Sequence record: NC_019410.1
Direction: 5' to 3' (one strand)
DNA length: 64,000 bases
Shown: positions 43,601 to 54,053 of the stretch, in pieces
Numbering within the stretch: position 1 is the first letter of the stretch
Layout of the letters: each line of letters begins with the position of its first letter
Program-made: the position numbers and the translations under genes
The notes under the pieces: model-generated
Databases searched by the model: none
What the model was told of the DNA's origin: nothing
Seen by the model: the letters and a program-made list of their open reading frames with translations, nothing else

Positions 43601-46061
43601 GGTCAACGCCTCGTCGGGCGACGACATCTCGCTCTACGCCGACATCGGCACGATCTACGTCCTCCAGGTCTACGGCCAGGGCTTCTGGATTTCCGAGGAC
43701 AACTACGTCCACGCCCTGCCCGATCCGCTGATCGTCACCACCACCGCGCCGGAAGGCTCGGCGCGCGGCGACGTCCATATCGTCCAGCCGCTGCCGACCA
43801 TCGTCGTCACCGCGCCGGTCCCGGTCGCGGCGGGTAACGCCCTGGCCGACGCCTATACGGGCGACTTCATCATCCTGGTCGCCGCGCCGGTTCCGCAAAC
43901 GGAACTGAACGCGAACGTCAACGTCTCGATGCCGCCGCCGATCGTCATCAACGGCAATGACGCGGAAGCCTCGCTTGACCTGAGCGTGCCGTTCAGCGAC
44001 ACGGCGGTGTTCGTTACCGGCCCTGAGGCTCTGGGCCTGGGCTTCCACGGCGGCGAGATGGGACCGCCGATCGTGGTCACCCCGCCGCAGGGCGGCCCGG
44101 AGATTTCGGTCGAAATCTTCGTCGATCCCGGCACGATCCTGGTGGAGGCCCCGCGCTTCCACTATATCCCCCCGATCACGGTGTTCCCGCCCGAAGGCGT
44201 GGCCCTCGACGCCAAGTCGGCCGAGGCTTCCGGTGATTTGGGGACCATCACCATCGGGGTCCCGACCGGCGGCTACCAAGCCAACGTCGCCATCAACCTG
44301 CCGCTGCCGACGATCTTCGTCAACGTCCCGCAGGTCGTGGTCTTCGCCTCGGTCGCCGTGTCGGGCGACATCGGGACGATCACCCTCACCCCGCCGGCCG
44401 CCACCCTGACTGCCGGCGCGGACGCGGCCTTCACCCTGCCCGGCCCGATCGTTGTCACCGCGCCCGAGGCGACGGCGACGGCGGGCACGGCGGCGGCGAC
44501 CTCTGGCGCCCTGACCACGATCACCCTCACCCCGCCCGAGGGCTCGGTCTCGACCGGCGCGGCGGCGGCGACCTCGGGCGCGATCGGCACGATCCTCGTC
44601 TCGCCGTTCGACGGCAGCGTCTTCATCTCCTATCCGGGCAATGCGTCGGGCGCGATCGGCACGATCGTCGTCACGCCGCCGGCCGCGACCGTCTCCAACG
44701 GCCGCAATCTGTCGATCGCCCTGCCCGGCCCGATCATCGTCACCCCGCCTGCGGCCCAGCCTCAGGCTGGCGCGGCGCTCTCCGGCGACATCGGTACGAT
44801 CGTCGTCACCAACCCGGATGGTCAGGGCACCGGCGACACCGTGCTGGCCTCGGGCGCGATCGGCACGATCGTCGTCACCACCCCGGACGGCGCGGCAACC
44901 GGGCGGGGCCTGGGCACGGGCGCGATCGGCACGATCGTCGTCACCCCGCCGGCCGCGACCCTGACCACCGGCGCCAACAAGGCCGCCGCCCTTCCCGGCC
45001 CGATCATCGTCACCCCGCCGGTTGGCGTGGGCCGCGTCCCCGCCGCCGGCACGGGCGATCTGGCGACGATCACCATCACCAGCACGCCCGAAGCCACCCT
45101 TTCGGTGGGCCAGGACATCGCTGGTCAGATCGGCACGATCAGCATCATCCCGCCCGAGGCGCTGCCGCAGGGCTCGGTGTTCGTCGACCCGACCGACGAA
45201 ATGGTCGTGCAGGTCCTGCCCCCGCAGGCCATCCTCTTCCGCGAGGCCACGGTCATCGTCGGCTTCCCGACGGTGTATCTGGTCGCGCCCGAGGCGATCA
45301 CCTATTCGCTGGCCGAATTCGCCTCGATCACCCTGCTGCCGCCGGACGCCTATGTCGACGTCCCGCTCCCGCTGGGCAAGAACCGCATCCGCTACCGCCG
45401 CAACAACACCGCTGGCCTTACTCCGACCAGCCTGCGTCCCAACGAGATCGCCCTGAACGAGACCGACGGCCTGCTGTTCACGCGCGACGGCGCCGGCGCG
45501 GTCAAGGCTACCCCGCTGGGCTTCCTGACCGGCGCGGGCGTGCCGCCGCCGATCACCGACAACGGCAAGGTCCTGTCGGGCGGCCTGTCCTGGGAGACGC
45601 CGAACACCCGCTACCTCCTGCCGGTCCGCAACGCGCCGCCGGCTGGCGCGCGCATCGCCCTGGGCGAGGGCGTGGTGGGCGTTACGACCTTCACCCCGAC
45701 GGTCGACGTCACCTACACGCGTCCGTTCTTCGTGGCCAAGACCATCGACATCCAGGCGCTGTCGGTGGATGTGGTGGGCGCCGCCGCCGCCACGGCCGAA
45801 CTGGGCCTGATCGGCTGGTCCCTGTCGGGCGTGCCCGGCGCGACCCTGGCGCTCGGTACGGTCAGCACCGCGACCACCGGCGTCAAGACGGCGACCGGCA
45901 CGGCCGTGACCTTGACGCCGGGCTGGTACGCCTCCACCTTCAAGGTCACCGGCGCGGCGGGGGCGTCGTTCCGGGCTCCGACCGCACCGACGGCGATCGC
46001 GCCGGACCTCACCGTGACGCCGGGCGCCCCGGCGCCGGTCATGGCAGACCTGGAGGCCTAA
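37668..46061 (+). CDS. Giant glycine-rich, LamG/lectin-domain fibre (head-filament candidate), 2797 aa
   Basis: Five Gly-rich modules each starting xMW/xLWGGGG, LamG motif (FTIEAWF...WAHYAVVRD...GRIDEFR), SGDIGTIxVxxP repeats. Confidence 0.85.
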   Translation: MVDIVAGTPVSVSYSGASTTYVAAETGLMTVHLWGGAGAGGYYANGAGNPNKYGGAGGYATLNFLVQEGDVLTIEVGQGGQVPTGSGTTVTAGGSGGWPDGGYGGKSTSAWVGLGGGGGSTRLYRNGELIGVAGGGGGATGFYHGGNGGGMVGLASADASSGAGGTQSAGGTAGSGTLAIQTGLGFQGGRGGATASTAHAYAGGGGGGGLYGGASNGGGSGAHGSGGGGSGYINQNLLYSGRLQAGRIDALGVPFDVAGIRPAGVAEGGTGPTVASTGWGSITPGGDGFAYLSLTSVASATAFPTSGTTTLAYSGSRQVYTVTQLSTVDIEMWGGGGGGGFYTSGGASPRYGGAGGYTKFTKVLFPGDIVEIEVGQGGQAPTGVGGNIGGFGGWPNGGDGGRSSVNSATNMGGGGGSTNIYVNGRLLGVASGGGGSTGFYNGGNGGGKWGLADAAAASGTAGTWARDNSTGTGLGRGFFLRGGHGSPNESRDVAHPNAGAGGGGGYWGGGGARGGSGTHGAGGGGCGFINGDLTWNRDYQWGTQGTGQPYTGGAYTSGVAVGGTSGNTAGSTTNGGDGQIVFTVTAASTTTLPSDKNALTYSGAVQHYVVPTAGVIDLKMWGSGGGSAVRSTGTPGRGGGGGCTQVPFIPIKPGDIVTFAVGQGGRGAVDANSISPGGWPNGGYSGPSASAGGGGASLCYLNGELVAVAGSGAGAGISNGGFAGGAASCDPGYVNFTSHGGTQTTAGWCPTRVLEGTTYGTYMLGGDGQIDGVAPNNVNVNTGGGGGGGYYGGGGNATNSSRYWGGGGGSGYINPKFAGTIIGATSVNAANNTDPDYVAGVGVAGVGSTTYANPVTNGGDGRIVFTYDTPPNLVESLTTAVPVDGAVKTYIVGADGDLVLDLWGGGGGAATILGGGGSERGGGGGYVGGTYPVTAGQVIRFYNGRGGGGGVYTSGTATALVGTGGPSGWPDGGAGGYYAGAGSNGILAGAGGGSSRVYVDDQLILVAGGGGGGGAGTTTTTPGGGGGSTGGDSDAPAGRNFGATQARGGYNSNRPTDTVSSGGLFRGGAGYLSGGSSSISAQSAGGGGGGGLFGGGGSGSSVTYIGGSGGSGFIFDGLVVSKKDPYRADVIAQMSFESGAVVADGRVCEIQPIDTPPTAVTTSPKYGAYCGNYPGSGHSTMPVPAFGLQNFTIEAWFNPSSLGNGVLFAYGNSGVGGFSLHYASTTLYLRHNGDAATDVTWADTGRTANVWAHYAVVRDMAGTRVYKDGRLVMSYANSIGTTFTATQLTLANYTGASGASTRFSGRIDEFRATLGACRYVKPFVPSSFAAPLSTPLPTLTTITQAPQGSSGNAANNTDTNYIAGRGVGAQTRQTAGTAPSGGDGQISYFIATSTISASGPIGTVTVSGLTDAAAGAFYPLPGVGSVVVEPYTGARVNYEVTEAVGARIKVEMWGGGGGGSSANTALTTNGGGGGGYTVIELDLVQGDRITVQTPSGGAGGVNAGSGSAINLGGYPDGGDGYRPAFTALNCGGGGSARLWAQGNLAAVAGGGGGAAYGGGGYDFPGGAGGGNLGGPGAYDGVNAPFPNGGGTQIAGGAGTANGFNGASLQGGHGGVTPSVANNGCGGGGGYYGGGGGGAYKAGGGGSGYVNTGLPGYRTGSTTGGSGNLPAGMSSPNYVSGIGVGSNGKGGAFTNGGNGRIVISVITPTPGNASGSIGTVNVSGLDEFGLLIGVPTGDLDTIDVVVPVGQSGQPGFAEGPLTTIGVGPAETIPQAQAVVIVPINDQTSILIEPPINAPLEVPGEGIGELDTILVSPFDSTQTAGVAFDAADVPTITLVAPEAEAVEIPPVLTSGDIGTVIVTAPEATTQVIPPVETSGDIGTITVVTVTGEASWNNNVSASGDIGTIIVTVPDVVAVGDDLAEGLIGTITVIAPEGVALQDANVAADIGTISVYPIEGGQPGDAVGDIPYIQVVTPGATVNASSGDDISLYADIGTIYVLQVYGQGFWISEDNYVHALPDPLIVTTTAPEGSARGDVHIVQPLPTIVVTAPVPVAAGNALADAYTGDFIILVAAPVPQTELNANVNVSMPPPIVINGNDAEASLDLSVPFSDTAVFVTGPEALGLGFHGGEMGPPIVVTPPQGGPEISVEIFVDPGTILVEAPRFHYIPPITVFPPEGVALDAKSAEASGDLGTITIGVPTGGYQANVAINLPLPTIFVNVPQVVVFASVAVSGDIGTITLTPPAATLTAGADAAFTLPGPIVVTAPEATATAGTAAATSGALTTITLTPPEGSVSTGAAAATSGAIGTILVSPFDGSVFISYPGNASGAIGTIVVTPPAATVSNGRNLSIALPGPIIVTPPAAQPQAGAALSGDIGTIVVTNPDGQGTGDTVLASGAIGTIVVTTPDGAATGRGLGTGAIGTIVVTPPAATLTTGANKAAALPGPIIVTPPVGVGRVPAAGTGDLATITITSTPEATLSVGQDIAGQIGTISIIPPEALPQGSVFVDPTDEMVVQVLPPQAILFREATVIVGFPTVYLVAPEAITYSLAEFASITLLPPDAYVDVPLPLGKNRIRYRRNNTAGLTPTSLRPNEIALNETDGLLFTRDGAGAVKATPLGFLTGAGVPPPITDNGKVLSGGLSWETPNTRYLLPVRNAPPAGARIALGEGVVGVTTFTPTVDVTYTRPFFVAKTIDIQALSVDVVGAAAATAELGLIGWSLSGVPGATLALGTVSTATTGVKTATGTAVTLTPGWYASTFKVTGAAGASFRAPTAPTAIAPDLTVTPGAPAPVMADLEA

Positions 46062-46065
46062 GACC

Positions 46066-46734
46066 ATGCCGACCAACATCAACATGGCGCCGGACACCAC
46101 CCTGCTGGCCGATATCCTCCTCAATGGCGGAGCCGGCGCGCCGGCGGACCTGGAGGATGGCGAACTCTATATCGACGAGGCGGGCCGCAAGCTCTATGTC
46201 GAGACCGTGGTCGGCGTCCAGGCCATTCCGCTCGACGTCGGCTATGTCCCGCGCCGCCCCAGCGGCACGCCGCTCGACTACGTGGTCAACAAGACCGAGA
46301 CCGGGGCCGAGTGGGGGCCGCTGGAAGGCGGGGCCGGCGGCTCGCCGTTCGACGCGGCCGAGTTCCGCATCCCCGGCTTGGCTCCCACGGGCCTGGACAC
46401 GGTCGTCATGCCCGGTGCCTCCGGAGGCCTGGGACTGTTCGAGATGCCGATCCAGGACGTGCTCCTGAGCATCCGCGTACACGCCTCTGCGGGCGCGGGG
46501 TCCGTGACCGTGGCGCTCTACCCGTTCAACGGCTCGCTCGGCTCGCTGATCTTCACCCAGACCCTGACTTTCGCCGCCCCCGAGTCCCAGGTCGTGCCCG
46601 TGTCCCAGCCCCTGACGCCGGGCATCTACGCCTGGGTCTGGACCGGGACCGATGGCTTGACCCTAGATGCGGTCAAGGGCTCGCTCCCGTGGGCGACGCG
46701 CGAGCAAACCCATCCCGTGGCGATGAAGTTCTAA
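46066..46734 (+). CDS. Fibre-associated protein, paralogue of giant-fibre C-terminus
   Basis: PADLEDGELYIDE...LTPGIYAW. Confidence 0.75.
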   Translation: MPTNINMAPDTTLLADILLNGGAGAPADLEDGELYIDEAGRKLYVETVVGVQAIPLDVGYVPRRPSGTPLDYVVNKTETGAEWGPLEGGAGGSPFDAAEFRIPGLAPTGLDTVVMPGASGGLGLFEMPIQDVLLSIRVHASAGAGSVTVALYPFNGSLGSLIFTQTLTFAAPESQVVPVSQPLTPGIYAWVWTGTDGLTLDAVKGSLPWATREQTHPVAMKF

Positions 46735-46736
46735 CG

Positions 46737-47513
46737 ATGGCGATCCAGAACCCCCATTCCACCACGCCCGGCACCATGCCGCACCTGACGCCCGGCGAGA
46801 TCGGCGTCAACAAGGCCGACGACATCCTCTGGTTCCGCTCGCAGGGGCGCCGCGTGCCGATCATCCTGAGCGATCTTGACCGCGCCCCGCCGGCGGACGG
46901 CTATGTCGGCGCTCCCCTGACTCTGGTCGACGGCGCGCCGGCCTGGAATGTCAAGCTCTTGCCGTCCTCGATCGTCTCCGGCGCGGTCAAGGTCGATCTC
47001 CCGCCCGCCGCCGGCCTGCACGCCGTGCCGAGCGTCCTGCTCCAGGGCCTGGGGGCCGATCGCGTCCTGGCGACCAATGATCTGGACCTCACCCCCTTCT
47101 ATGTCCGCTCCGACTCCATCACCCTGACCCATCTGGCCTTCAGCGTGCGCTCGGCCGGCGCGCCGGCCATGCGCGTGGGGATCGTCGACAGCTTCGGCGT
47201 CGTCCAGGCCGACATCCTGGTCGCCGCGCCGGTCGTGGGCGCCAATGTCGTGGCCCTCTCGCCGGTCCTGACCCTCCAGCGCGGCGTCTACCGCACCATC
47301 CTGGCGACGACCGGGGCGGTGACGGTGGGGATCGCCACCGGCGCGCGCATGGAACAGGGCTGGGACATCATCGCCGACGCGCCGTCGTTTATCCGGGGCT
47401 ACAGCGGTAGCAAGAACACTGGCGGCGGCATCGGGAGCCTGCCAGCGCTCACCCCGCGCCGCGACCCCGCGCCGGGCCAGGATCACGCCGTCCTCCTGCG
47501 CTGGACGGCGTGA
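46737..47513 (+). CDS. Fibre-associated protein, paralogue of giant-fibre C-terminus
   Basis: PHLTPGEIGVNKADDIL...TPFYV...LQRGVY. Confidence 0.75.
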   Translation: MAIQNPHSTTPGTMPHLTPGEIGVNKADDILWFRSQGRRVPIILSDLDRAPPADGYVGAPLTLVDGAPAWNVKLLPSSIVSGAVKVDLPPAAGLHAVPSVLLQGLGADRVLATNDLDLTPFYVRSDSITLTHLAFSVRSAGAPAMRVGIVDSFGVVQADILVAAPVVGANVVALSPVLTLQRGVYRTILATTGAVTVGIATGARMEQGWDIIADAPSFIRGYSGSKNTGGGIGSLPALTPRRDPAPGQDHAVLLRWTA

Positions 47514-47545
47514 ATCTTGACACTCGGTCGAAATGCGGTTAACCT
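47508..47545 (+). promoter_or_regulatory. Promoter GCGTGAATC-TTGACA-N17-TAACCT
   Basis: Variant of recurrent motif with canonical spacing. Confidence 0.65.
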
Positions 47546-47575
47546 GCGCGCTCATCTGGAGTTTCGAGCGCCATC

Positions 47576-47842
47576 ATGGCCGAGCTTGTCCGCATCTATC
47601 ACCCCGAGACGAACGAGCCGTTCGACGTGATCCCGTCGACCGCCGAACGTCTGCGCCTGGGTCAAGGTCTGGACGGTCTGGTGTGGCTCTCGCAGCCCTT
47701 CTCCCGCGCCGCTGCCGAAGAGCCGGCGCCGGAAGCCCCCAAGGGGCGAGGTCGTAAGCGCGTCGCCGCGCCCGTCTCGGACGAAGCCGAAGACGATGGC
47801 TGGCGTGACGCGCCGACCGAGGACGCTTCCGAAGCCGCGTAA
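47576..47842 (+). CDS. Hypothetical protein (88 aa)
   Basis: V.IYHPE...GRGRK architecture like 33439 gene. Confidence 0.75.
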   Translation: MAELVRIYHPETNEPFDVIPSTAERLRLGQGLDGLVWLSQPFSRAAAEEPAPEAPKGRGRKRVAAPVSDEAEDDGWRDAPTEDASEAA

Positions 47843-47886
47843 GGCGCTTCCCCGTCCACTCTGCTGAAATTCGGTCTCAGTCCCAT

Positions 47887-47962
47887 GTCGGTCTAGCTCA
47901 TGGGGTAGAGCGGCGGTCTCCAAAACCGCGCGTGGCAGGTTCGAGTCCTGCGACCGGCGCCA
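47887..47962 (+). tRNA. tRNA-Trp (CCA)
   Basis: Cloverleaf, TTCGA T-loop, encoded CCA. Confidence 0.9.
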
Positions 47963-47967
47963 TTTCC

Positions 47968-48042
47968 GCGTCCATCGTATATGGGTTATTGCTTCGCGTT
48001 GCCAACGCGACGAACCGGGTTCGAGTCCCGGTGGACGCTCCA
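47968..48042 (+). tRNA. tRNA-Gly (GCC)
   Basis: Anticodon arm CGCG-TTGCCAA-CGCG, U73 CCA. Confidence 0.9.
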
Positions 48043-48048
48043 ATCCAG

Positions 48049-48122
48049 GCGGATATAGCTCAAAGGGAGAGCTACTGCCTTCCAAGCAGAAGATGCGGGT
48101 TCGAGCCCCGCTATCCGCTCCA
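48049..48122 (+). tRNA. tRNA-Gly (TCC)
   Basis: Cloverleaf, encoded CCA. Confidence 0.9.
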
Positions 48123-48143
48123 AAATTTTCTTCCACGACAAGC

Positions 48144-48172
48144 TTGACAGCCGCCGAGATTTGTGAGAGCCT
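48144..48172 (+). promoter_or_regulatory. Promoter TTGACA-N17-GAGCCT for Glu/Asp tRNA unit
   Basis: Same TTGACA-N11-TTGTGAGAGCCT layout as 48941. Confidence 0.65.
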
Positions 48173-48181
48173 TCAACCATT

Positions 48182-48244
48182 ATGACGCACCTCCTGACCC
48201 GTTACGAACGCGAGGCCACCGGCCTCGATACCACCACCGCCTAA
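48182..48244 (+). CDS. Near-leaderless 20-aa leader peptide MTHLLTRYEREATGLDTTTA
   Basis: ATG at predicted transcription start; overlaps hairpin plus U-tract before tRNA-Glu. Confidence 0.5.
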   Translation: MTHLLTRYEREATGLDTTTA

Positions 48245-48278
48245 AAGCGGTTCTGGTAACCGAGGCCTTTTGTCATGT

Positions 48279-48356
48279 GGCCCGGTCGTCTAGCGGTTTG
48301 CAGGATTCGTGACTTTCAATCACGAGAGCGGAGTTCGAGTCTCCGTCGGGCCTCCA
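48279..48356 (+). tRNA. tRNA-Glu (TTC)
   Basis: Cloverleaf, encoded CCA. Confidence 0.9.
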
Positions 48357-48379
48357 CCCCCAAAGCCTCCTCTGAGCTT

Positions 48380-48454
48380 GGTGCGTTCGTATATCGGTCA
48401 ATACTCCGGATTGTCGATCCGGCAAGAGGGGTTCGATTCCCCTACGCACCGCCA
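48380..48454 (+). tRNA. tRNA-Asp (GTC)
   Basis: Cloverleaf, G73 CCA. Confidence 0.9.
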
Positions 48455-48465
48455 GGGCTTTCCCA

Positions 48466-48624
48466 ATGCCGCTTCAGTCGGGTTCGAGCGACGCCGTCGT
48501 CTCGCACAACATCGCCAAGCTGATCGACGAGGGCTACTCCAGGGAGCAGGCCGTTGCGATCGCTCTCTCCCAGGCGCGCAAGCCGCGCCGTCCGAAGGTC
48601 TCGCGCGGCTCGCGCCGGCGCTGA
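48466..48624 (+). CDS. 52-aa conserved small phage protein ([21 protein letters not shown])
   Basis: Recognisable small-protein motif; not in ORF track. Confidence 0.7.
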
Positions 48625-48695
48625 CCTCGCCTCGCTAAAGCACCCCCAGGTTCCCGGCCTCGTCGTGAGGTCGCCTGCGGTCGCGCGAGGCTTCT

Positions 48696-48920
48696 ATGAC
48701 CTTTCTTGATCTTCGTTCGCAGTCGAGCACCGCGCTCCTGCGCCATGTGTCTTCCCGATCCCCGATGGCGGAAGCGGCTCGCACCGAGTTGCTGACCCGA
48801 GGCCTCGTCCCGCTCCTCACGCGACACAACGGCTGGCGCCTCGCCCCGAGCGAGCCCTTTCCGCAGCATCTCATCCCGCGCCCCGATCCGCTCGCGAGGT
48901 TCACGTGGCGGGCGGGATGA
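48696..48920 (+). CDS. Hypothetical protein (74 aa)
   Basis: GAGG SD. Confidence 0.5.
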   Translation: MTFLDLRSQSSTALLRHVSSRSPMAEAARTELLTRGLVPLLTRHNGWRLAPSEPFPQHLIPRPDPLARFTWRAG

Positions 48921-48940
48921 AGATTTTTCTCATGACGTGC

Positions 48941-48969
48941 TTGACATCCGTCTAAAGTTGTGAGAGCCT
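48941..48969 (+). promoter_or_regulatory. Promoter TTGACA-N17-GAGCCT for Pro-Ser tRNA unit
   Basis: Duplicate layout of 48144 promoter. Confidence 0.65.
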
Positions 48970-49064
48970 GTCCAACGTCACGGATCACGACACTCCTCGG
49001 AGTGCAAAAGCGCGATCCTTCGTTATTCCCAGGGCCGTCAGCGGGCGGCCGTTCGAGAGCCATC

Positions 49065-49202
49065 ATGTTCGCCTTGTCGCATAACAGCCTGAGCACGAAA
49101 GCCGCCTCCCCGGCGACGCTTTCGCTTGCGCTGCCGGCGACGGCCACGAAGCCCTCGACCAAGCCGACCACCTCGGCCTCGCACTCGACGGATCACCTCT
49201 AG
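49065..49202 (+). CDS. 45-aa leader peptide of Pro/Thr/Lys/Leu/Ala/Ser tRNA operon
   Basis: Residues 8-39 exclusively P/T/K/L/A/S; followed by alternative helices and terminator. Confidence 0.65.
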   Translation: MFALSHNSLSTKAASPATLSLALPATATKPSTKPTTSASHSTDHL

Positions 49203-49267
49203 GGTATCTCGTCTCGGGTGCAGGCCTTGGAGCCGCACCCGCTACCAACATCCTGTTGACCTAGCGC

Positions 49268-49305
49268 AAGGCGGCTCCCAGCAAGGAGACCGCCTTTTCT
49301 TTTTC
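49268..49305 (+). terminator. Attenuator terminator before tRNA-Pro
   Basis: AAGGCGGCTCC...GGAGACCGCCTT plus TTTTCTTTTT. Confidence 0.8.
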
Positions 49306-49316
49306 GCGTTGATCAT

Positions 49317-49392
49317 CGGGGTGTAGCTCAGTCGGTAGAGCGCTCGGTTCGGGACCGAGAGGCCGTGGGTTCGAGTCCCGCCACCCAGACCA
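49317..49392 (+). tRNA. tRNA-Pro (CGG)
   Basis: Cloverleaf, encoded CCA. Confidence 0.9.
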
Positions 49393-49399
49393 ACGCCAT

Positions 49400-49474
49400 C
49401 GGGATGTAGCTCAGCGGTAGAGCGCGCGGCTGGGGGCCGCGAGGCCGCAGGTTCGAGACCTGCCACCCCGACCA
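49400..49474 (+). tRNA. tRNA-Pro (GGG)
   Basis: Cloverleaf, encoded CCA. Confidence 0.9.
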
Positions 49475-49479
49475 ACAAT

Positions 49480-49552
49480 GCTGCTGCGCCTGGATCGGCG
49501 CCGGCCCCTTGGTATGGGGAAGTAGAAGGTTCAATTCCTTCCAGCAGCACCA
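49480..49552 (+). tRNA. tRNA-Thr (GGT)
   Basis: CCCC-TTGGTAT-GGGG arm, G1C2 acceptor; reduced D-arm. Confidence 0.75.
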
Positions 49553-49557
49553 ACAAC

Positions 49558-49627
49558 GCCGATGCCTCTAGGAGGACACGTCTTTCGTAATGACGTCAGG
49601 TGGGTGCGATCCCCACTTTCGGCTCCA
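49558..49627 (+). tRNA. Degenerate tRNA-Thr (CGT), possibly pseudogene
   Basis: CGTC.TTCGTAA.GACG arm, T-loop TGCGATC, weak D-arm, ends CCACCA. Confidence 0.5.
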
Positions 49628-49662
49628 CCAAGATGATCGAGGAGAGATCAGACGAAACAAAT

Positions 49663-49749
49663 GGATGTGTCACCTCAGTGGCGAGAGGACCGGGCTCTTA
49701 ATCCGGCAGCGAAAGCTCATCGTGGGTTCGAGTCCCACCACATCCTCCA
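49663..49749 (+). tRNA. tRNA-Lys (CTT) with long variable arm
   Basis: CCGGG-CTCTTAA-TCCGG; 15-nt V region; U73. Confidence 0.85.
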
Positions 49750-49754
49750 ATAAT

Positions 49755-49844
49755 GCACGAGTGACCCGAGCGGCGAAGGGCGTCGACTTTTAATCGACTG
49801 GGCGTCCAGCCTCACCGAGGGTTCGAGTCCCTCCTCGTGCTCCA
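49755..49844 (+). tRNA. tRNA-Lys (TTT) with long variable arm
   Basis: GTCGA-CTTTTAA-TCGAC; 18-nt V region; U73. Confidence 0.85.
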
Positions 49845-49850
49845 AGATGT

Positions 49851-49936
49851 GCGAAAGTGGCGGAACAAGGTAGACGCACCGGTCTCAGGTACCGGCGGCT
49901 TCGGTCATGAGGGTTCGAGTCCCTCCTTTCGTACCA
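49851..49936 (+). tRNA. tRNA-Leu (CAG)
   Basis: Class II cloverleaf. Confidence 0.9.
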
Positions 49937-49943
49937 ACGACAT

Positions 49944-50028
49944 GCCGGTCTGGCGGAAATGGCAGACGCAGTGGCTTCAAGTCCCACCGCCTTCGGGCGT
50001 CCCGGTTCGATGCCGGGGACCGGCACCA
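49944..50028 (+). tRNA. tRNA-Leu (CAA)
   Basis: Class II cloverleaf. Confidence 0.9.
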
Positions 50029-50034
50029 AAATGA

Positions 50035-50122
50035 TGCGAAGTGGCGGAATTTGGTAGACGCACCGGCATGAGAGGCCGGCGCCCTTCGGGGCGTGAGGGT
50101 TCGAGTCCCTTCTTCGCGACCA
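50035..50122 (+). tRNA. tRNA-Leu (GAG)
   Basis: Class II cloverleaf; A32. Confidence 0.9.
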
Positions 50123-50212
50123 AAGACGAGATTATGCCGGACGGCGCAGGCGCGCGGGGGAGGTTGTGTCCCTCCTTGGCTCCGATCGTTACGGAGGTTC
50201 GGTTCCAGTTAC

Positions 50213-50283
50213 GGGGTATGCGCAGGGCGCAGGCATCCTTTGCAAGGAAGTCGGGGTGGGTTCGAGTCCCACATACTCCACCA
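50213..50283 (+). tRNA. tRNA-Ala (TGC)
   Basis: G3:U70 pair, A73 CCA; short D-arm. Confidence 0.8.
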
Positions 50284-50287
50284 ACAC

Positions 50288-50375
50288 GGTAGGTTGGCTG
50301 AGAGGCCGAAGGCGCCCGTTTCGAAAACGGGAGAACCGCAAGGTTCCGTGGGTTCGAATCCCACACCTACCTCCA
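50288..50375 (+). tRNA. tRNA-Ser (CGA)
   Basis: Class II cloverleaf. Confidence 0.9.
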
Positions 50376-50379
50376 ACAT

Positions 50380-50467
50380 GGATGTATGGCTGAGAGGCCG
50401 AAGGCGCCCGCTTGGAAAGCGGGTGAACCGCAAGGTTCCGTAGGTTCGAATCCTACTGCATCCGCCA
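50380..50467 (+). tRNA. tRNA-Ser (GGA)
   Basis: Class II cloverleaf. Confidence 0.9.
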
Positions 50468-50471
50468 ACAT

Positions 50472-50558
50472 GGTAGGTGGTTCCGGCCTGGGGCCGGACC
50501 CGGTTGCTAACCGGCCGGAGCCGCAAGGCTTGGGGTTCGATTCCTCCTCCTACCGCCA
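50472..50558 (+). tRNA. tRNA-Ser (GCT)
   Basis: Class II cloverleaf. Confidence 0.85.
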
Positions 50559-50598
50559 ACATCTCCCAGGCCTATAGCCTGGGAGGGTTTGGACATAA

Positions 50599-51087
50599 TC
50601 AGGCGTGGTTCGGAAACTCGGCGATCTCAATCCCAGGCGAGGCGCTGACGACCAACCAGTAAGCTCCGGTCCAGCGCAAGACAACCGCAGGCGGATAGGC
50701 CGGGGCCAAGGGGGTGAGCACGGATGCCGGATCGGCTACGATAGAATCGGGCAACGGAACGATCAAGGCTGGACCGGTTTTCGCCGTCGCAGGATCACCA
50801 TAACCGGAAGCGAAGACGGGGGTCTGAACGCCAGCGTCAGCCAATATGCCGAGGATAATAGGCATAGCTAAGGGCGCACTCTGCGGAGCATGTGTCCCAC
50901 GAGAGAATGTGATGAAAAGTTCGTCTCCTACTTCCTTCGCGGCAGTAAGGAATCCATATCTTGCGGCATAGTCGGCTGCTCCGAATTCAGGAGAGACTTG
51001 GCTTACGAGATGGACGCGCTGCTCTCCGTTCGGGTTGACGATTTGAATCGAAGCCTCAATACCTCGGTTCATCGTGATTGCGGTCAT
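50599..51087 (-). CDS. Lower-GC hypothetical protein inserted antisense within tRNA array (162 aa)
   Basis: GGAG SD before ATG on minus strand; A/T-ending codons; hairpin at 50563-50585. Confidence 0.65.
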   Translation of the reverse strand: MTAITMNRGIEASIQIVNPNGEQRVHLVSQVSPEFGAADYAARYGFLTAAKEVGDELFITFSRGTHAPQSAPLAMPIILGILADAGVQTPVFASGYGDPATAKTGPALIVPLPDSIVADPASVLTPLAPAYPPAVVLRWTGAYWLVVSASPGIEIAEFPNHA

Positions 51088-51189
51088 AAGTATCTCCAGC
51101 GGCTGGATGCCGCAGTGCGATGCCTAAAGTCGAGTTTTCGACGTGTCCAGCCCCTTTGAAGTTGACACCCGCGACGCGGCCTGTCATAC

Positions 51190-51410
51190 GTCACGACAGA
51201 GCGAACACCCCCCGGCCGGGTTTGTTGTCATACCGGGTCGTCACGCCCCGTCGGGGCTCTAGTAGCTCTTCGTGTGGAGTTTTCCGCCTCCCTCCCAGAC
51301 AAGGAGGCGGACCCAACCAACATCGCGATCTCCCGTGATCGTCGGCGACGGGCGCCGTCAGAGACCTTTGCCTGCGCGGCTCCGCTGCGGCCCTGGTCTC
51401 GTCCCGACCA
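51190..51410 (+). ncRNA. Candidate structured ncRNA ending in ACCA
   Basis: TTGACA promoter ~51163; no credible ORF; nested helices GTCGG/CCGAC, GACGG/CCGTC, GAGACC/GGTCTC; T-run after. Confidence 0.4.
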
Positions 51411-51429
51411 AATTTTTTCGTCGTGGTGC

Positions 51430-51458
51430 TTGACACTGCGAAACTGTTCTGCTAGGGT
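51430..51458 (+). promoter_or_regulatory. Promoter TTGACA-N17-TAGGGT for Tyr-Arg tRNA unit
   Basis: Canonical spacing. Confidence 0.75.
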
Positions 51459-51465
51459 TCACGTC

Positions 51466-51564
51466 ATGAGCAAGACCTATCGTCAATTTGTGCGCCAGAT
51501 TCAGGTCGTCCGGAATATCCGGGCGGGCCGCTCGCGCATGGCTGACGAAGGGTTCAGGGACTAG
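51466..51564 (+). CDS. Leaderless 32-aa leader peptide MSKTYRQFVRQIQVVRNIRAGRSRMADEGFRD
   Basis: Residues 5-19 exclusively Y/R/Q/F/V/I/N; ATG at predicted +1. Confidence 0.7.
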   Translation: MSKTYRQFVRQIQVVRNIRAGRSRMADEGFRD

Positions 51565-51594
51565 GTCCCACACCACGTTCAACCAGCTTTCGAG

Positions 51595-51633
51595 AGGCCC
51601 GCCTGGAAACCCCAGGCGGGCCTTTTTTCTTTT
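51595..51633 (+). terminator. Attenuator terminator before tRNA-Tyr
   Basis: AGGCCCGCCTGG/CCAGGCGGGCCT 12-bp stem plus TTTTTTCTTTT. Confidence 0.85.
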
Positions 51634-51666
51634 CCACTTTCGATCACGGAGATCGCCAACAGACAC

Positions 51667-51751
51667 GGATGCTTAAAGCTGGAGGGCTCCAGCCGGGGAC
51701 TGTAAATCCCCTCTCTTCGGAGGAGTGGTTCGATCCCACAAGCATCCACCA
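51667..51751 (+). tRNA. tRNA-Tyr (GTA)
   Basis: Class II cloverleaf. Confidence 0.85.
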
Positions 51752-51756
51752 ACCAC

Positions 51757-51832
51757 GGACTCGTAGCTCAGCAGGTAGAGCGCCGGCTTGAAACCCCGGA
51801 GGTCGGAGGTTCGACTCCTCCCGTTTCCACCA
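51757..51832 (+). tRNA. tRNA-Phe (GAA)
   Basis: Cloverleaf, encoded CCA. Confidence 0.85.
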
Positions 51833-51837
51833 ACAAC

Positions 51838-51913
51838 GCCCGATGAGCCAGATGGGAAGGCGCCGCCGTGACATGGCGGGATTGAGAAGGTTCGATTCCT
51901 TCATCAGGCACCA
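51838..51913 (+). tRNA. tRNA-Val (GAC)
   Basis: CCGCC-GTGACAT-GGCGG; G32. Confidence 0.85.
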
Positions 51914-51915
51914 AT

Positions 51916-51991
51916 GCAAGTGTAGCTCAGTTGGTAGAGCAGCGGACCGATAATCCGCCCGTCCCTGGTTCGAGTCCAGGCATTTGCACCA
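51916..51991 (+). tRNA. tRNA-Ile (GAT)
   Basis: Loop CCGATAA (C33). Confidence 0.85.
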
Positions 51992-51998
51992 GTTCTGA

Positions 51999-52073
51999 TG
52001 TGGCATAGCTCAGGGGTAGAGCGCGCGCTTGATAAGCGTGAGGTCGGGGGTTCGAAGCCCTCTGCCACTACCA
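51999..52073 (+). tRNA. tRNA-Ile (GAT)
   Basis: Cloverleaf, encoded CCA. Confidence 0.9.
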
Positions 52074-52106
52074 GTTTCCAGGCCGGCGGAGATGCGCCGA
52101 ACCTGA

Positions 52107-52182
52107 TGGCGTTTAGCATAGTGGGAGTGCAGGGGTGTCACATACCTCGATCGAACTGGTTCGATTCCAGTAACGCCAACCA
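52107..52182 (+). tRNA. tRNA-Val (CAC)
   Basis: Loop GTCACAT. Confidence 0.8.
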
Positions 52183-52187
52183 AATGT

Positions 52188-52261
52188 TGAGGGTTCGTCT
52201 AACGGTAGGACGGCTGGGTCTGGTCCAGCTAATCTAGGTTCGAGTCCTAGCCCCTCATCCA
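52188..52261 (+). tRNA. tRNA-Gln (CTG)
   Basis: GCTGG-GTCTGGT-CCAGC. Confidence 0.85.
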
Positions 52262-52268
52262 AGTTTGT

Positions 52269-52342
52269 TCTCGGGTGGTCTAATGGTAAGACATCTGGTT
52301 TTGGTCCAGAGGATTGGGGTTCGATTCCTTGGCCGAGAACCA
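52269..52342 (+). tRNA. tRNA-Gln (TTG)
   Basis: TCTGG-TTTTGGT-CCAGA. Confidence 0.85.
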
Positions 52343-52357
52343 ACTACTTGAGTTTAT

Positions 52358-52432
52358 TCCAGTCAATGCACAAGGTGTGCAGCGGCACTGTTAATGCCTG
52401 TGAGCCCGGTTCGATTCCGGGGTCTGGAGCCA
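52358..52432 (+). tRNA. tRNA-Asn (GTT)
   Basis: GGCA-CTGTTAA-TGCC, G73 CCA. Confidence 0.85.
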
Positions 52433-52458
52433 ACACGCCGGCCGAGGCCGGCACATGC

Positions 52459-52541
52459 GCCCTGGTAACCGAGGGGGATTACGAATCCCTTAGTCGTAGC
52501 AGGAGTTGAAAAGGGTGGTTCGAATCCACTCCAGGGTGCCA
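52459..52541 (+). tRNA. tRNA-Arg (ACG)-like, D-armless with 23-nt variable region
   Basis: 7-bp acceptor, 8-nt connector, GGGGA-TTACGAA-TCCCT, canonical T-arm, CCA. Confidence 0.65.
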
Positions 52542-52548
52542 AATTCAC

Positions 52549-52631
52549 AGCGCGCAGGCCGAGCAGGATCATCGTCAGGCGTCGCCCTCCGAAGGCGAAG
52601 AGGCCCGGTTCGAGTCCGGGGCGCGCTGCCA
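52549..52631 (+). tRNA. tRNA-Arg (CCG) with enlarged D region
   Basis: TCGCC-CTCCGAA-GGCGA; 26-nt D region. Confidence 0.8.
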
Positions 52632-52634
52632 TCC

Positions 52635-52712
52635 GCGCGGGTAGCTCAATGGACCCAGAGCAGCCGTCTTCTACACGGTGGGTTGGGGGTTCGAATCCCT
52701 CCCCGTGCGCCA
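52635..52712 (+). tRNA. tRNA-Arg (TCT)
   Basis: Cloverleaf, encoded CCA. Confidence 0.9.
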
Positions 52713-52749
52713 AACTTGACAGGCGATGTCGAATCGCCGAGGATCAAAC

Positions 52750-53047
52750 CGTAGGCCTCTTCCCGTGGGCCTGACATATACGTCCGCCAGCACTGCCATT
52801 CCGCGTCAGCGGGCGCGGCGCGAGGAAGGGTTAACCCCTCGTTGTCACGCAGTCGGGTGGTGTGGACGTCCCAACGTGATCTTCGAACGCGGCATGCCGT
52901 GGAGGGGTGATCGGATGGCGAACCAAGGGACACCTTCTTATCCTGGCCTGGGTCGCATGAGGCTCCGCTGGGAGAAACGGCCTGACCCGACCGGAGGTGC
53001 GTTCAGGATGCCGGCTCCCCATGCCAGAGCCTCGTGGACTAGGGTCT
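52750..53047 (+). ncRNA. Candidate ~300-nt structured ncRNA
   Basis: TTGACA-N17-GAGGAT promoter at 52716; long-range complementarities; no credible ORF. Confidence 0.45.
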
Positions 53048-53070
53048 GAAATTTTTCTGGCGCTGATGTG

Positions 53071-53203
53071 TTGACACTCCTCGGAGGCTCGGCTAAAACC
53101 AGCAGCGTCAGAGCGGCGTTGGACCACGAGGTCCGCCGCGAGCTTCTGCGTTGTCGTCAGGAACGGCCCGCCAGCAATCCCGCTGGCGGGTCGTTTCGTT
53201 TTG
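53071..53203 (+). ncRNA. Promoter plus ~95-nt small RNA ending in CAATCCCG-loop hairpin
   Basis: TTGACA-N17-TAAAAC; hairpin GGACC/GGTCC; 11-bp stem 53164-53193 with T-rich tail. Confidence 0.55.
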
Positions 53204-53239
53204 GGCGCAATGCGACGTTCAGTCCAACCATGGGTAGTG

Positions 53240-53277
53240 TCATGAATCTTGACTTTCGGCGCTTATTCCGGTAGCTT
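53240..53277 (+). promoter_or_regulatory. Promoter TCATGAATC-TTGACT-N17-TAGCTT
   Basis: Variant of recurrent motif. Confidence 0.7.
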
Positions 53278-53322
53278 TCCCGACATCAGCAAACGCTCAC
53301 AAGTCGGGGACCGAGAGCCGTC

Positions 53323-53739
53323 ATGTCGCAAGACCACAACGGCTCGTCCTCGGGCCAAGAACGCATCTACCAGAAACTGGATGAGCTTGGCTCCATGCAC
53401 GCGCGCACCCGTGAAGATATTGCCCGCATCCAGGAGATGATGCGAGCGGTCGGTTCGTCGCAGGAGCGGATCGAAAAGCGCCAGGACCATTTCGAGCGCG
53501 AAATCTGGCGTGAGATGGAAGATCGCGCCGCGCGCACGAGCGCCCAACTCGACGAGATCAAGAGCCACACCAACCTGCGCATCGAGGAGATCGAGGCCAA
53601 GGTCGACACGATCCGCGAGGAACGGATCGCCGAGAAGGCCCAGTGGCGCGGCCCCGAGAAGGCCATCGCCGCCCTGGTCGCCGTCGCCGGGGCCATCGCC
53701 GCCTTCGCCACGATCCTCACTTTCCTGAAGGGACACTAG
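53323..53739 (+). CDS. Coiled-coil protein with C-terminal TM (138 aa)
   Basis: Heptad-like composition, hydrophobic tail. Confidence 0.75.
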   Translation: MSQDHNGSSSGQERIYQKLDELGSMHARTREDIARIQEMMRAVGSSQERIEKRQDHFEREIWREMEDRAARTSAQLDEIKSHTNLRIEEIEAKVDTIREERIAEKAQWRGPEKAIAALVAVAGAIAAFATILTFLKGH

Positions 53740-53846
53740 GACTTATAGTCAAGCTTGGGTGCCTGCGGCCAGAAGTCGCGCTTCTTGACACCCGATCTGG
53801 GCCGGCATAACCATAGGGCCATCGTTCCTGGGTGGAGTTTTCCCTA

Positions 53847-54053
53847 ATGGCTGTCGCGCTTACTGTCGTCTCGGTTGAGACCGAATCTACCATCCAAGGT
53901 GTTGACCCCGACGCGGCGCATGTCCGCCTGATCGAGGTCCTGCATACCGCCGCAGAAGCGGGTCTTGGGGAAATGACGTTGGAAGTCAAAGCGGAGATCG
54001 CGGCGCTGCTCCAGCAGGCGTCCGTGGAACTCTCCCACTGCCGGCCGGTGTAG
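53847..54053 (+). CDS. Hypothetical protein (68 aa)
   Basis: GGAG SD before ATG 53847. Confidence 0.55.
   Translation: MAVALTVVSVETESTIQGVDPDAAHVRLIEVLHTAAEAGLGEMTLEVKAEIAALLQQASVELSHCRPV

Follow-up and report, generated by a model that had tools for sequence, protein, structure and literature searches.

Transcription attenuators of amino-acid operons, including those that sense several amino acids (thr for Thr/Ile; ilvGMEDA and ilvBN for Leu/Val/Ile) and those of trp, his, leu, and pheA, are the closest kin to the phage element described here. They share with it a short leader ORF with regulatory codons, an intrinsic terminator before the first gene, and mutually exclusive helices; the choice between these depends on the ribosome position in the known attenuators and is predicted to do so in the phage element. 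To our knowledge, regulation of bacterial tRNA genes takes place at their promoters, through growth-rate and stringent control, rather than by attenuation, and we know of essentially no study on the control of tRNA genes in phages. The large tRNA cluster of phiCbK-like phages has been proposed to supplement the host pool for the codons that the phage uses most (Gill et al., 2012; PMC3556154). In that report, the cluster is described as genes plus predicted terminators, gp083 is a hypothetical gene, and no regulation by leader translation is proposed. In our literature search, we did not come across any tRNA genes reported to be controlled by a leader peptide.

The window analyzed here is a 64-kb stretch of DNA, bases 1-64000 of the phiCbK-like Caulobacter virus Karma (record NC_019410.1). 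One locus in it, element B, is quite probably a ribosome-mediated transcription attenuator with a phage tRNA operon under its control, as judged from the sequence and from folding models. The features of element B and of its sister elements A2 and C are summarized in Table 1. The promoter, the 45-aa ORF, and the terminator of the original prediction were confirmed by motif counts, annotation, and folding. The promoter motif TTGAC-N-TGWGAGA is found at two sites in the window, 48941 and 48144 (before another tRNA leader), with 0.07 expected, and CTTGACA is found 16 times vs 3.4 expected. The promoter columns of element B are invariant across 10 phages, Colossus and PW included. The 5′-UTR hairpin reads GGACGCC/GGCGTCC in Swift, where both sides of the helix are changed, and it is possibly a pause site or a translation control element.

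Table 1. Features of element B and of sister elements A2 and C in the Karma window.
Feature	Position	Strand	Content	Basis or remark
Promoter of element B	48941-48966	+	-35 TTGACA (48941-48946); -10-like box TGTGAGAG (~48958-48966)	Conserved motif
5′-UTR hairpin	49033-49050	+	GGCCGUC-AGCG-GGCGGCC	Alignment; just 5′ of SD-like GAGAG (49055-49059)
Leader ORF of element B (gp083)	49065-49202	+	45 codons + UAG	
Regulatory run of gp083	49086-49190	+	Codons 8-42, all P/T/K/L/H/A/S	Longest such run in six frames
Segment 1 (3′ end of ORF)	49175-49188	+	Pairs with segment 2; stop codon near hairpin tip	Centroid fold and no-ribosome MFE
Segment 2	49214-49226	+	Pairs with segment 1, or via CGGGUGC (49215-49221) with segment 3	Centroid, MFE
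Segment 3	49229-49241	+	GGAGCCGC (49229-49236) overlapping GCACCCG	Predicted folds
Small hairpin	49246-49258	+	CAACA-UCC-UGUUG	Enclosed by the antiterminator
Intrinsic terminator	49268-49305	+	Segment 4 (49268-49278), segment 5 (49286-49296), U-tract to 49305	Folding; GenBank
Putatively regulated tRNA cluster	49317-50558	+	14 tRNA or tRNA-like genes: Pro-CGG, Pro-GGG, Thr-GGU, Thr-CGU, Lys-CUU, Lys-UUU, Leu-CAG, Leu-CAA, Leu-GAG, His-GUG-like, Ala-UGC, Ser-CGA, Ser-GGA, Ser-GCU	ARAGORN default/relaxed and inspection
Sister element A2	48144-48268	+	Promoter; 20-codon ORF 48182-48244 (MTHLLTRYEREATGLDTTTA); hairpin 48221-48267	Before tRNA-Glu and tRNA-Asp
Sister element C	51429-51630	+	Promoter; ORF 51466-51564; terminator 51592-51626	Before Tyr, Phe, Val, Ile, Gln, Asn, and Arg tRNAs

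The leader ORF, labeled hypothetical in GenBank, encodes the peptide MFALSHNSLSTKAASPATLSLALPATATKPSTKPTTSASHSTDHL. As predicted, 38 of its 45 residues, and every residue from 8 to 39, are P, T, K, L, A, or S. This run of 32 residues (35 with His) has a runner-up of 17 residues in all six frames of the window (128,000 residues), over which the frequency of the set is 0.44. The amino-acid set of residues 8-42 is identical to that of the tRNA cluster downstream. A match to the cluster is seen for 41 of 44 residues of gp083 and for 31-36 of 44 codons, and the density of cognate codons reaches p = 3e-3 per window. Given the peptide and the codon usage of the phage itself, the probability of finding all 13 Watson-Crick cognate codons is 0.0135, and rare cognate codons are over-represented. 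The codon matches to 13 anticodons agree with those listed originally, and the five GCC codons lie outside the standard wobble of the phage Ala-UGC. No single codon is repeated in a run, so that one hungry codon may give only a weak signal. In PHROGs, gp083 matched phrog_12742, a family of unknown function; for the leader peptides and their neighbors, PHROGs returned function-unknown families only, and Pfam gave no match.

ARAGORN called 11 tRNAs in the cluster at default settings, and a relaxed threshold added Ser-GCU (50472-50558). The original count of 13 tRNA genes holds when Thr-CGU (~49557-49630) is taken as the 13th; this tRNA has a reduced D-arm, is kept in four lineages, and is called by ARAGORN in the Rogue and Colossus copies. 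The count has to be extended by a 14th member, a non-canonical His-GUG-like tRNA at ~50136-50209, which explains the three His codons in gp083. The genome paper and ARAGORN at default settings both suggested that the Rogue group has no Ser tRNAs despite nine Ser residues in the leader. This was overturned with the relaxed threshold, which gave Ser-CGA, Ser-GGA, and Ser-GCU. A tRNA-Ile(AAT) called by ARAGORN proved to be a mis-registered Asn-GUU, and the program also misses a Tyr-GUA.

The leader ORF is intact in all 15 relatives examined and has been retained in five diverged lineages (Shapiro-, Poindexter-, Colossus-, and Bertelyvirus, and Brevundimonas phages), which share ancestry and hence are not independent inventions. 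Between genera, the identity of gp083 orthologues falls to 11/39-20/42, yet 33-42 of 38-44 residues belong to the set. Among close relatives, all 12 residue replacements and one 3-aa insertion stay within the set, against a neutral expectation of 50%. In the five lineages, each leader fits its own cluster and not the other clusters. In detail, TGG is found only in the Bertelyvirus leader, where tRNA-Trp belongs to the element B cluster, AAA only in lineages with Lys-UUU, and CGA only in lineages with Arg-ACG. We conclude that the predicted match between peptide and tRNA set is real and has been maintained in evolution.

The untranslated region downstream of the ORF (49203-49305) is 94-98% identical to that of Poindextervirus and is better conserved than the ORF itself. 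The mutually exclusive helices 1:2, 2:3, and 3:4 and the terminator appeared in MFE or centroid folds where they had been predicted, but they are made of five segments, not the four originally proposed. In the centroid fold and the no-ribosome MFE, GGAGCCGC pairs with GCGGCUCC (49271-49278) in the 5′ arm of the terminator and would act as the antiterminator, and the GCACCCG of segment 3 has segment 2 as its partner. The CGGGUGC/GCACCCG pair is also present in Bertelyvirus leaders. The Karma terminator is a bulged, GC-rich stem of 11 bp followed by CUUUUCUUUUUC, with a local fold of -18.5 kcal/mol. It was missed by a simple terminator scan but recovered by direct folding and by TransTermHP, whose prediction in GenBank is at 49270-49294. 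In RBC57, Rogue, and BL10, an A-U pair of the small hairpin between the antiterminator strands is replaced by U-A, a compensatory change. The element B region is 91% invariant among alignable relatives, and compensatory changes are limited to this inner hairpin and the 5′-UTR hairpin; there is almost no covariation for helices 1:2, 2:3, and 3:4, because they hardly vary among these relatives. More distant lineages retain the architecture with different sequences. In Colossus (Colossusvirus) and RB23 (Bertelyvirus), the final hairpin of leader B has no good U-tract, suggesting that regulation may in some cases act on a step other than intrinsic termination. Apart from tRNAs and noise, an Rfam search of 46000-54000 at E <= 1 returned nothing: neither a leader family nor the T-box nor any further cis-regulatory family was matched.

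The effect of ribosome position was modeled in five lineages by placing the ribosome at different codons and folding only the RNA downstream of it. In four of the five (Karma, Rogue, Colossus, and Kikimora), the terminator was favored with the ribosome at the stop codon. The difference in modeled terminator probability between the stop codon and an upstream stall was 0.14, 0.39, 0.75, 0.39, and 0.06 in the five lineages. The modeled switch exceeded 39-40 of 40 shuffles in four lineages; that of Karma was small (0.14) and was equaled by one of 40 shuffles, and RB23 showed no switch. Thus the direction originally proposed, terminator at the stop codon and read-through at an upstream stall, is reproduced by occlusion folding in four lineages but not in RB23, and in Karma the modeled effect is slight. 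Kikimora gave the opposite state in its MFE under one assumed footprint. Equilibrium folding that allows pairs across the ribosome footprint showed no informative switch, because the ribosome ends up enclosed within hairpins; this result counts against the proposed switch.

These features suggest the following mechanism. Transcription would start from the promoter at 48941 and produce a leader, nearly all codons of which are read by the 14 downstream tRNAs, followed by the five-segment RNA. When the cognate aminoacyl-tRNAs are all plentiful, the ribosome would reach the UAG, cover segment 1, and open the stop-codon hairpin. Segments 2 and 3 would then pair, leaving segment 4 free to form the 4:5 terminator, and the tRNA genes would be off. 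When any sensed tRNA is scarce, the ribosome would lag in codons 8 to ~32 and the long 1:2 hairpin would form. Segment 3 would in turn pair with the 5′ arm of the terminator, and RNA polymerase would read into the cluster. The outcome would be negative feedback on tRNA supply, that is, a tRNA homeostat.

The pattern had been predicted to recur at 51466; this was confirmed, and the helices there show covariation. Judging from its sequence, element C is a textbook four-segment attenuator with canonical 1:2, 2:3, and 3:4 helices. The core of its leader, YRQFVRQIQVVRNIR, is made up of the seven amino acids of its own cluster and no others, an uncommon composition (F/V/I/Q/R/Y/N). Pairing in its three mutually exclusive helices is 93-99%, and compensatory pairs number 2, 2, and 3, among them a three-way change in CcrSC. 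IMG/VR pattern scans for further relatives of the C attenuator returned only chance GC-rich matches or already known phages. In A2, the Glu and Asp codons of the leader are conserved in every lineage. The composition match of A2 is not significant alone (p = 0.27), with only 2-3 matching codons, its geometry predicts termination upon ribosome stalling at the Glu codons, and outside the Karma group the final hairpin has no U-tract. For want of a significant match and of a clear switch direction, A2 is a weaker attenuator candidate, and we count it only as part of the overall pattern. We infer that at least two tRNA sub-operons, those led by the ORFs at 49065 and 51466, have an attenuator whose peptide fits their own tRNA set, with the ORF at 48182 as a third candidate.

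Other readings of the locus have to be weighed against attenuation by codon-specific stalling. A leader with a switchable terminator could report overall translation capacity, such as ribosome availability or global elongation rate, with the composition match being secondary. A ribosome-dependent structural switch needs no codon specificity, and the lack of homopolymeric codon runs in gp083 and the few matching codons of A2 would suit such a coupling sensor. It leaves unexplained, however, why each leader fits the set of its own cluster and avoids the other sets, why TGG, AAA, and CGA track the tRNA content, and why rare cognate codons are over-represented, and we regard it as unlikely. It is also improbable, somewhat more so, that ribosome position switches the fold with an output other than intrinsic termination, which could be access of Rho, 5′ processing of the first tRNA (by RNase P or RNase E), or the stability of the precursor, and with a polarity that might reverse in some lineages. 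In Colossus, RB23, and the A2 leaders outside the Karma group, the final hairpin, which ends 10-15 nt ahead of the first tRNA, has no U-tract; this, the opposite state in the Kikimora MFE, and the A2 geometry would all be compatible with another output. On the other hand, canonical GC-rich stems with U-tracts are present in the B leaders of Karma, Rogue, and Kikimora and in every C leader, and four lineages show the homeostatic direction when all codon positions are profiled.

The ORF itself could be questioned in two ways. gp083 carries a CDS annotation and falls into a PHROG, and segments rich in A, S, T, and P are common in GC-rich genomes, as the six-frame frequency of the set illustrates; it might then be an ordinary small low-complexity protein with its own function, whose position and composition are coincidental or due to GC-rich bias. 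We consider this very improbable, since its run is far longer than the runner-up, its composition is conserved whereas its sequence is not, the non-coding RNA past the stop codon varies less than the ORF, and leader C fits its own cluster with quite another composition. Hardly credible is the idea that the antisense ORF 48635-49171 is the translated gene and the plus-strand ORF its shadow. Karma does have this minus-strand open frame of 178 aa, but its frame and length shift among close relatives (61 to 264 aa), Rogue, Kikimora, and RB23 lack it, neither Pfam nor PHROGs returned a match, and it overlaps the annotated and conserved plus-strand gp082.

Returning to codon-specific attenuation, we think it likely on balance that the phiCbK-like phages (Dolichocephalovirinae) run a codon-resolved tRNA homeostat. 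In it, at least two and possibly three sub-operons, each with a leader peptide that samples just the codons served by its tRNAs, are released only upon slow decoding of these codons, as would happen if infection depleted or cleaved the host tRNAs. This would be the first leader-peptide attenuation of tRNA genes and the most multivalent attenuator known. If so, the classical leader-peptide mechanism has been turned to sensing tRNA supply and correcting it directly, a single short peptide integrates the decoding speed of many codons, and large phage tRNA arrays are expressed on demand rather than constitutively. It would also account for several "hypothetical" mini-genes of phiCbK-like genomes and give synthetic biology a compact natural device for sensing how fast particular codons are translated. 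The question of what phages need tRNAs of their own for, and at which times, would become testable, and Caulobacter NA1000 with phiCbK is a tractable system.

Among known systems, phage tRNA clusters have been described in T4, T5, mycobacteriophages, and phiCbK-like phages (PMC3556154), the last entry being the same cluster as that studied here. T-box riboswitches, in which terminator read-through is tied to the state of a specific tRNA, resemble the behavior predicted for element B. They bind uncharged tRNA directly without translation and control synthetase and amino-acid genes in Gram-positive bacteria, whereas the putative sensor of element B is a translated ORF, and the T-box fold was not matched in the element B region (Rfam, E <= 1). 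The pheST operon, with its pheM leader, is similar to what is proposed for element B as a case of leader-peptide attenuation of a translation-apparatus component that senses charged tRNA, but it concerns the synthetase of one amino acid on a bacterial chromosome, whereas element B would concern tRNA genes for many amino acids in a phage. Of the attenuators of amino-acid operons, sister element C shares the canonical layout. Element B differs from them in having five segments and a 1:2 hairpin with the stop codon at its tip, and in read-through as the predicted default without translation. It would sense seven amino acids and 13-14 anticodons within 45 codons without a homopolymeric run, unlike the his or phe leaders. 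Finally, the attenuators of amino-acid operons regulate enzymes (biosynthesis or synthetase genes), whereas element B would regulate tRNAs; the molecules sensed would be the molecules produced, and a direct feedback loop would thus be closed.

By database comparison, Karma is a phiCbK-like jumbo siphophage, and the window matches it at 100% with identical coordinates. GenBank annotates the leader B ORF as gp083, hypothetical protein, and also carries a predicted rho-independent terminator and tRNA genes beyond it. The genome paper lists tRNAs and terminators and does not propose regulation of them (PMC3556154). ORF, 45-aa peptide and codon content all agreed with the original prediction: P, T, K, L, A and S make up 38 of 45 residues and 100% of residues 8-39. 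CTTGACA has 16 sites where 3.4 would be expected, TTGAC-N-TGWGAGA has two sites only (48144 and 48941), each before a tRNA leader, and the promoter boxes of leader B are invariant in an alignment of ten phages. At the level of sequence motifs, the promoter is genuine.

Features of the tRNA region and of relatives' loci
Feature	Coordinates	Remarks
gp080 promoter	47516	CTTGACA
gp080	47576-47842	conserved 88-aa ORF
Element A2	48144-48268	before tRNA-Glu and tRNA-Asp
A2 ORF	48182-48244	20 codons; MTHLLTRYEREATGLDTTTA
Leader B ORF	49065-49202	gp083
Segment 1	49175-49188	last nine codons
Segment 2	49214-49226	CGGGUGC at 49215-21
Segment 3	49229-49241	GGAGCCGC at 49229-36; GCACCCG at 49235-41
Terminator B, folding	49268-49297	plus U-tract; 5' arm bases 49271-78
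Terminator B, GenBank	49270-49294	rho-independent, predicted
Eleven tRNAs	49317-50467	ARAGORN, default settings
tRNA-Thr CGU	about 49557-49630	reduced D-arm
tRNA-Lys CUU	49663-49749	long variable arm
tRNA-Lys UUU	49755-49844	long variable arm
tRNA-His GUG	about 50136-50209	odd T-loop, U37
tRNA-Ser GCU	50472-50558	ARAGORN, relaxed scoring
gp084	50599-51087	minus strand; 162 aa; phrog_28405
Element C	51429-51630	predicted attenuator
Leader C ORF	51466-51564	peptide MSKTYRQFVRQIQVVRNIRAGRSRMADEGFRD; core YRQFVRQIQVVRNIR
tRNA-Tyr GUA	about 51666-51751	class II; missed by ARAGORN
tRNA-Asn GUU	52358-52432	"Ile-AAT" in ARAGORN
Unannotated region	52715-53200	about 480 nt, after last tRNA
Promoters therein	52715; about 53072	CTTGACA; TTGACA
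Strong terminator therein	53160-53197	
Long-arm tRNA-Lys, relatives' loci	L003 7685-7774; L014 3630-3716; L015 (RB23) 1680-1766	
Segment 2 duplication, RB23	L015 1271-1300	14-nt tandem; CCGCTCCGGGTGCC

Cluster B contains genes beyond the ARAGORN calls. The Thr-CGU gene of the original prediction is indeed a tRNA. Karma, Rogue, Colossus and Kikimora all retain it, and ARAGORN recognises the copies in Rogue and Colossus. A further non-canonical gene, His-GUG, is missed or mis-called by ARAGORN and has orthologues in the His tRNAs of Rogue, Colossus, Kikimora and RB23. Once His is counted, the cluster's amino acids {P,T,K,L,H,A,S} are the exact set found in peptide residues 8-42. The two Lys tRNA genes span 87-90 nt. 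Their long variable arm is of class-II type and their discriminator base is U, features that are, to our knowledge, unusual among Lys tRNAs; the long-variable-arm form is kept throughout the subfamily.

This match was compared with chance. In a six-frame translation of the 64 kb, about 128,000 residues in total, no {PTKLAS} run exceeds that of the leader B peptide: it has 32 residues (35 with His), and the runner-up has 17. Cognate codons occupy 28 of the 45 positions of the whole ORF, Thr-CGU and His not counted, a number reached by 0.3% of stop-free windows. When the peptide was fixed and synonymous codons were drawn from phage usage, all 13 Watson-Crick cognate codons were present in 1.35% of simulations; two of the 13, AAA and TTG, account for 6% of the Lys codons and 4% of the Leu codons of the phage.

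The leader B ORF is intact before the orthologous tRNA cluster in five groups: Shapirovirus (Karma, Swift, Magneto, phiCbK, Ccr10, RBC57), Poindextervirus (Rogue, BL10, BL57, RBC8), Colossusvirus (Colossus, PW), Bertelyvirus (RB23, SC, BL47) and the Brevundimonas phages (Kikimora and, though its leader B was not extracted, probably Gurke). Between genera, identity of the peptide is down to 11/39-20/42, whereas the tRNA set still accounts for 33-42 of 38-44 residues; the Kikimora value of 39/44 needs a Thr-CGU-like gene found by alignment and missed by ARAGORN, and is 29/44 on ARAGORN calls alone. Among close relatives, nine core columns vary, and neither any of the 12 alternative residues nor a 3-residue insertion leaves the set, where 50% of single-nucleotide replacements would be expected to stay in it. 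In five lineages, each leader fits its own cluster and not the other clusters. The Bertelyvirus leader B has a Trp codon, and this is the one group whose cluster ends in tRNA-Trp; Karma, Rogue and Kikimora have both the AAA codon and Lys-UUU, and Colossus, PW and RB23 have neither; CGA in leader C is confined to lineages with Arg-ACG. These comparisons indicate that leader codons follow tRNA content. Between Karma and Poindextervirus, identity is 94-98% in the untranslated stretch 49203-49305 but only 79-83% in the 5' UTR, and about 86.5% overall in the aligning part of the 6-kb tRNA region; whole-genome similarity is about 63% (PMC3556154).

Folding reproduced the helices proposed earlier for element B, namely 1:2, 2:3, the antiterminator (3:4) and the terminator. 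Segment 1 is predicted to pair with segment 2 in a long hairpin with UAG near its tip; alternatively, CGGGUGC of segment 2 would pair with GCACCCG, and GGAGCCGC could pair with the 5' arm of the terminator. The ribosome-free minimum free energy structure from 49164 to the tRNA start has 1:2 and 3:4 and lacks the terminator; placing a ribosome at the stop codon gives 2:3 and the terminator instead. The switch measure, obtained over all ribosome positions by subtracting the terminator probability for upstream stalls from the one at the stop codon, was 0.14 in Karma, 0.39 in Rogue, 0.75 in Colossus, 0.39 in Kikimora and 0.06 in RB23; the first four values beat 39-40 of 40 dinucleotide shuffles. 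The predicted five-segment logic of Colossus matches that of Karma with different sequences. SC and BL47 have related segments (CGGGUGC/GCACCCG), and SC shows no switch, the final hairpin being present in its minimum free energy structure with and without a ribosome at the stop codon. RB23, the single lineage whose modelled switch is lost, also carries a segment 2 duplication, which is absent from SC and BL47 (loci L016 and L019).

Element B is most likely a ribosome-mediated attenuator upstream of tRNA genes. Fast decoding of the leader would lead to termination, and slow decoding at any sensed codon to read-through into the tRNA genes, with negative feedback on tRNA supply as the net effect. 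The weak points of this model are the small equilibrium switch effect in Karma, the little covariation in the element's own helices, the poor U-tracts of the Colossusvirus and Bertelyvirus orthologues and the lack of homopolymeric codon runs in leader B. It is very unlikely that the antisense ORF is the true gene; its frame and length shift among relatives and it matches no family. The predicted type of regulation is conserved across the phage subfamily.

The repeat noted at 51466 was confirmed immediately before its own tRNA cluster. After correction of two ARAGORN errors (the missed Tyr gene and the Asn gene, reassigned by alignment), cluster C specifies Y, F, V, I, Q, N and R and no other amino acid. 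In six frames of the 64 kb, this ORF holds the longest {FVIQR} run (11 residues; next longest 9) and the longest {FVIQRYN} run (15; next 13). By its predicted four-segment structure, the leader C RNA is a textbook attenuator. In nine diverged sequences, helices 1:2, 2:3 and 3:4 are 93%, 97% and 99% paired, and 2, 2 and 3 of their pairs carry changes in both partners; CcrSC has an identical G-to-A in segment 2 and the terminator 3' arm and a matching C-to-T in the 5' arm. Folding of the RNA downstream of a placed ribosome left the antiterminator intact for stalls at codon 14 or earlier and freed the terminator arm for a ribosome beyond codon 14 or at the stop. The antiterminator RNA (CGGGCGGGCC) dictates the conserved 'AGRS' residues of leader C. 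Its ATG lies about 10-13 nt past the -10 box, and the mRNA is therefore nearly leaderless.

Mini-ORF A2 has conserved Glu and Asp codons and the promoter type of B, and its stop codon is predicted to fall in the downstream hairpin's loop; taken by itself, the composition match of A2 does not reach significance. By simple geometry, Glu-codon stalls would favour the hairpin and an Asp-codon stall would prevent it. The first tRNA trio (Trp/Gly/Gly) has no mini-leader and is preceded by gp080, whose C-terminus retains Trp (DDGWRD; DESWRS in Colossus); in Kikimora, a P-loop NTPase gene lies directly 5' of the trio. Gene gp084 separates clusters B and C in Karma and Swift only, where the gap is about 1290 nt, versus about 695 nt in Magneto, phiCbK, Ccr10 and RBC57, and its region looks like a lineage-specific insertion. 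The unannotated region may encode an sRNA or another leader, or may hold decayed tRNAs.

Element B matched no Rfam leader or T-box family, and searches of the full-text literature available without subscription yielded no account, for phages or for bacteria, of tRNA genes controlled by a leader peptide. In operation, element B would resemble pheM-pheST and the multivalent thr and ilv leaders, but it differs from these known families in that the regulated genes are tRNAs.
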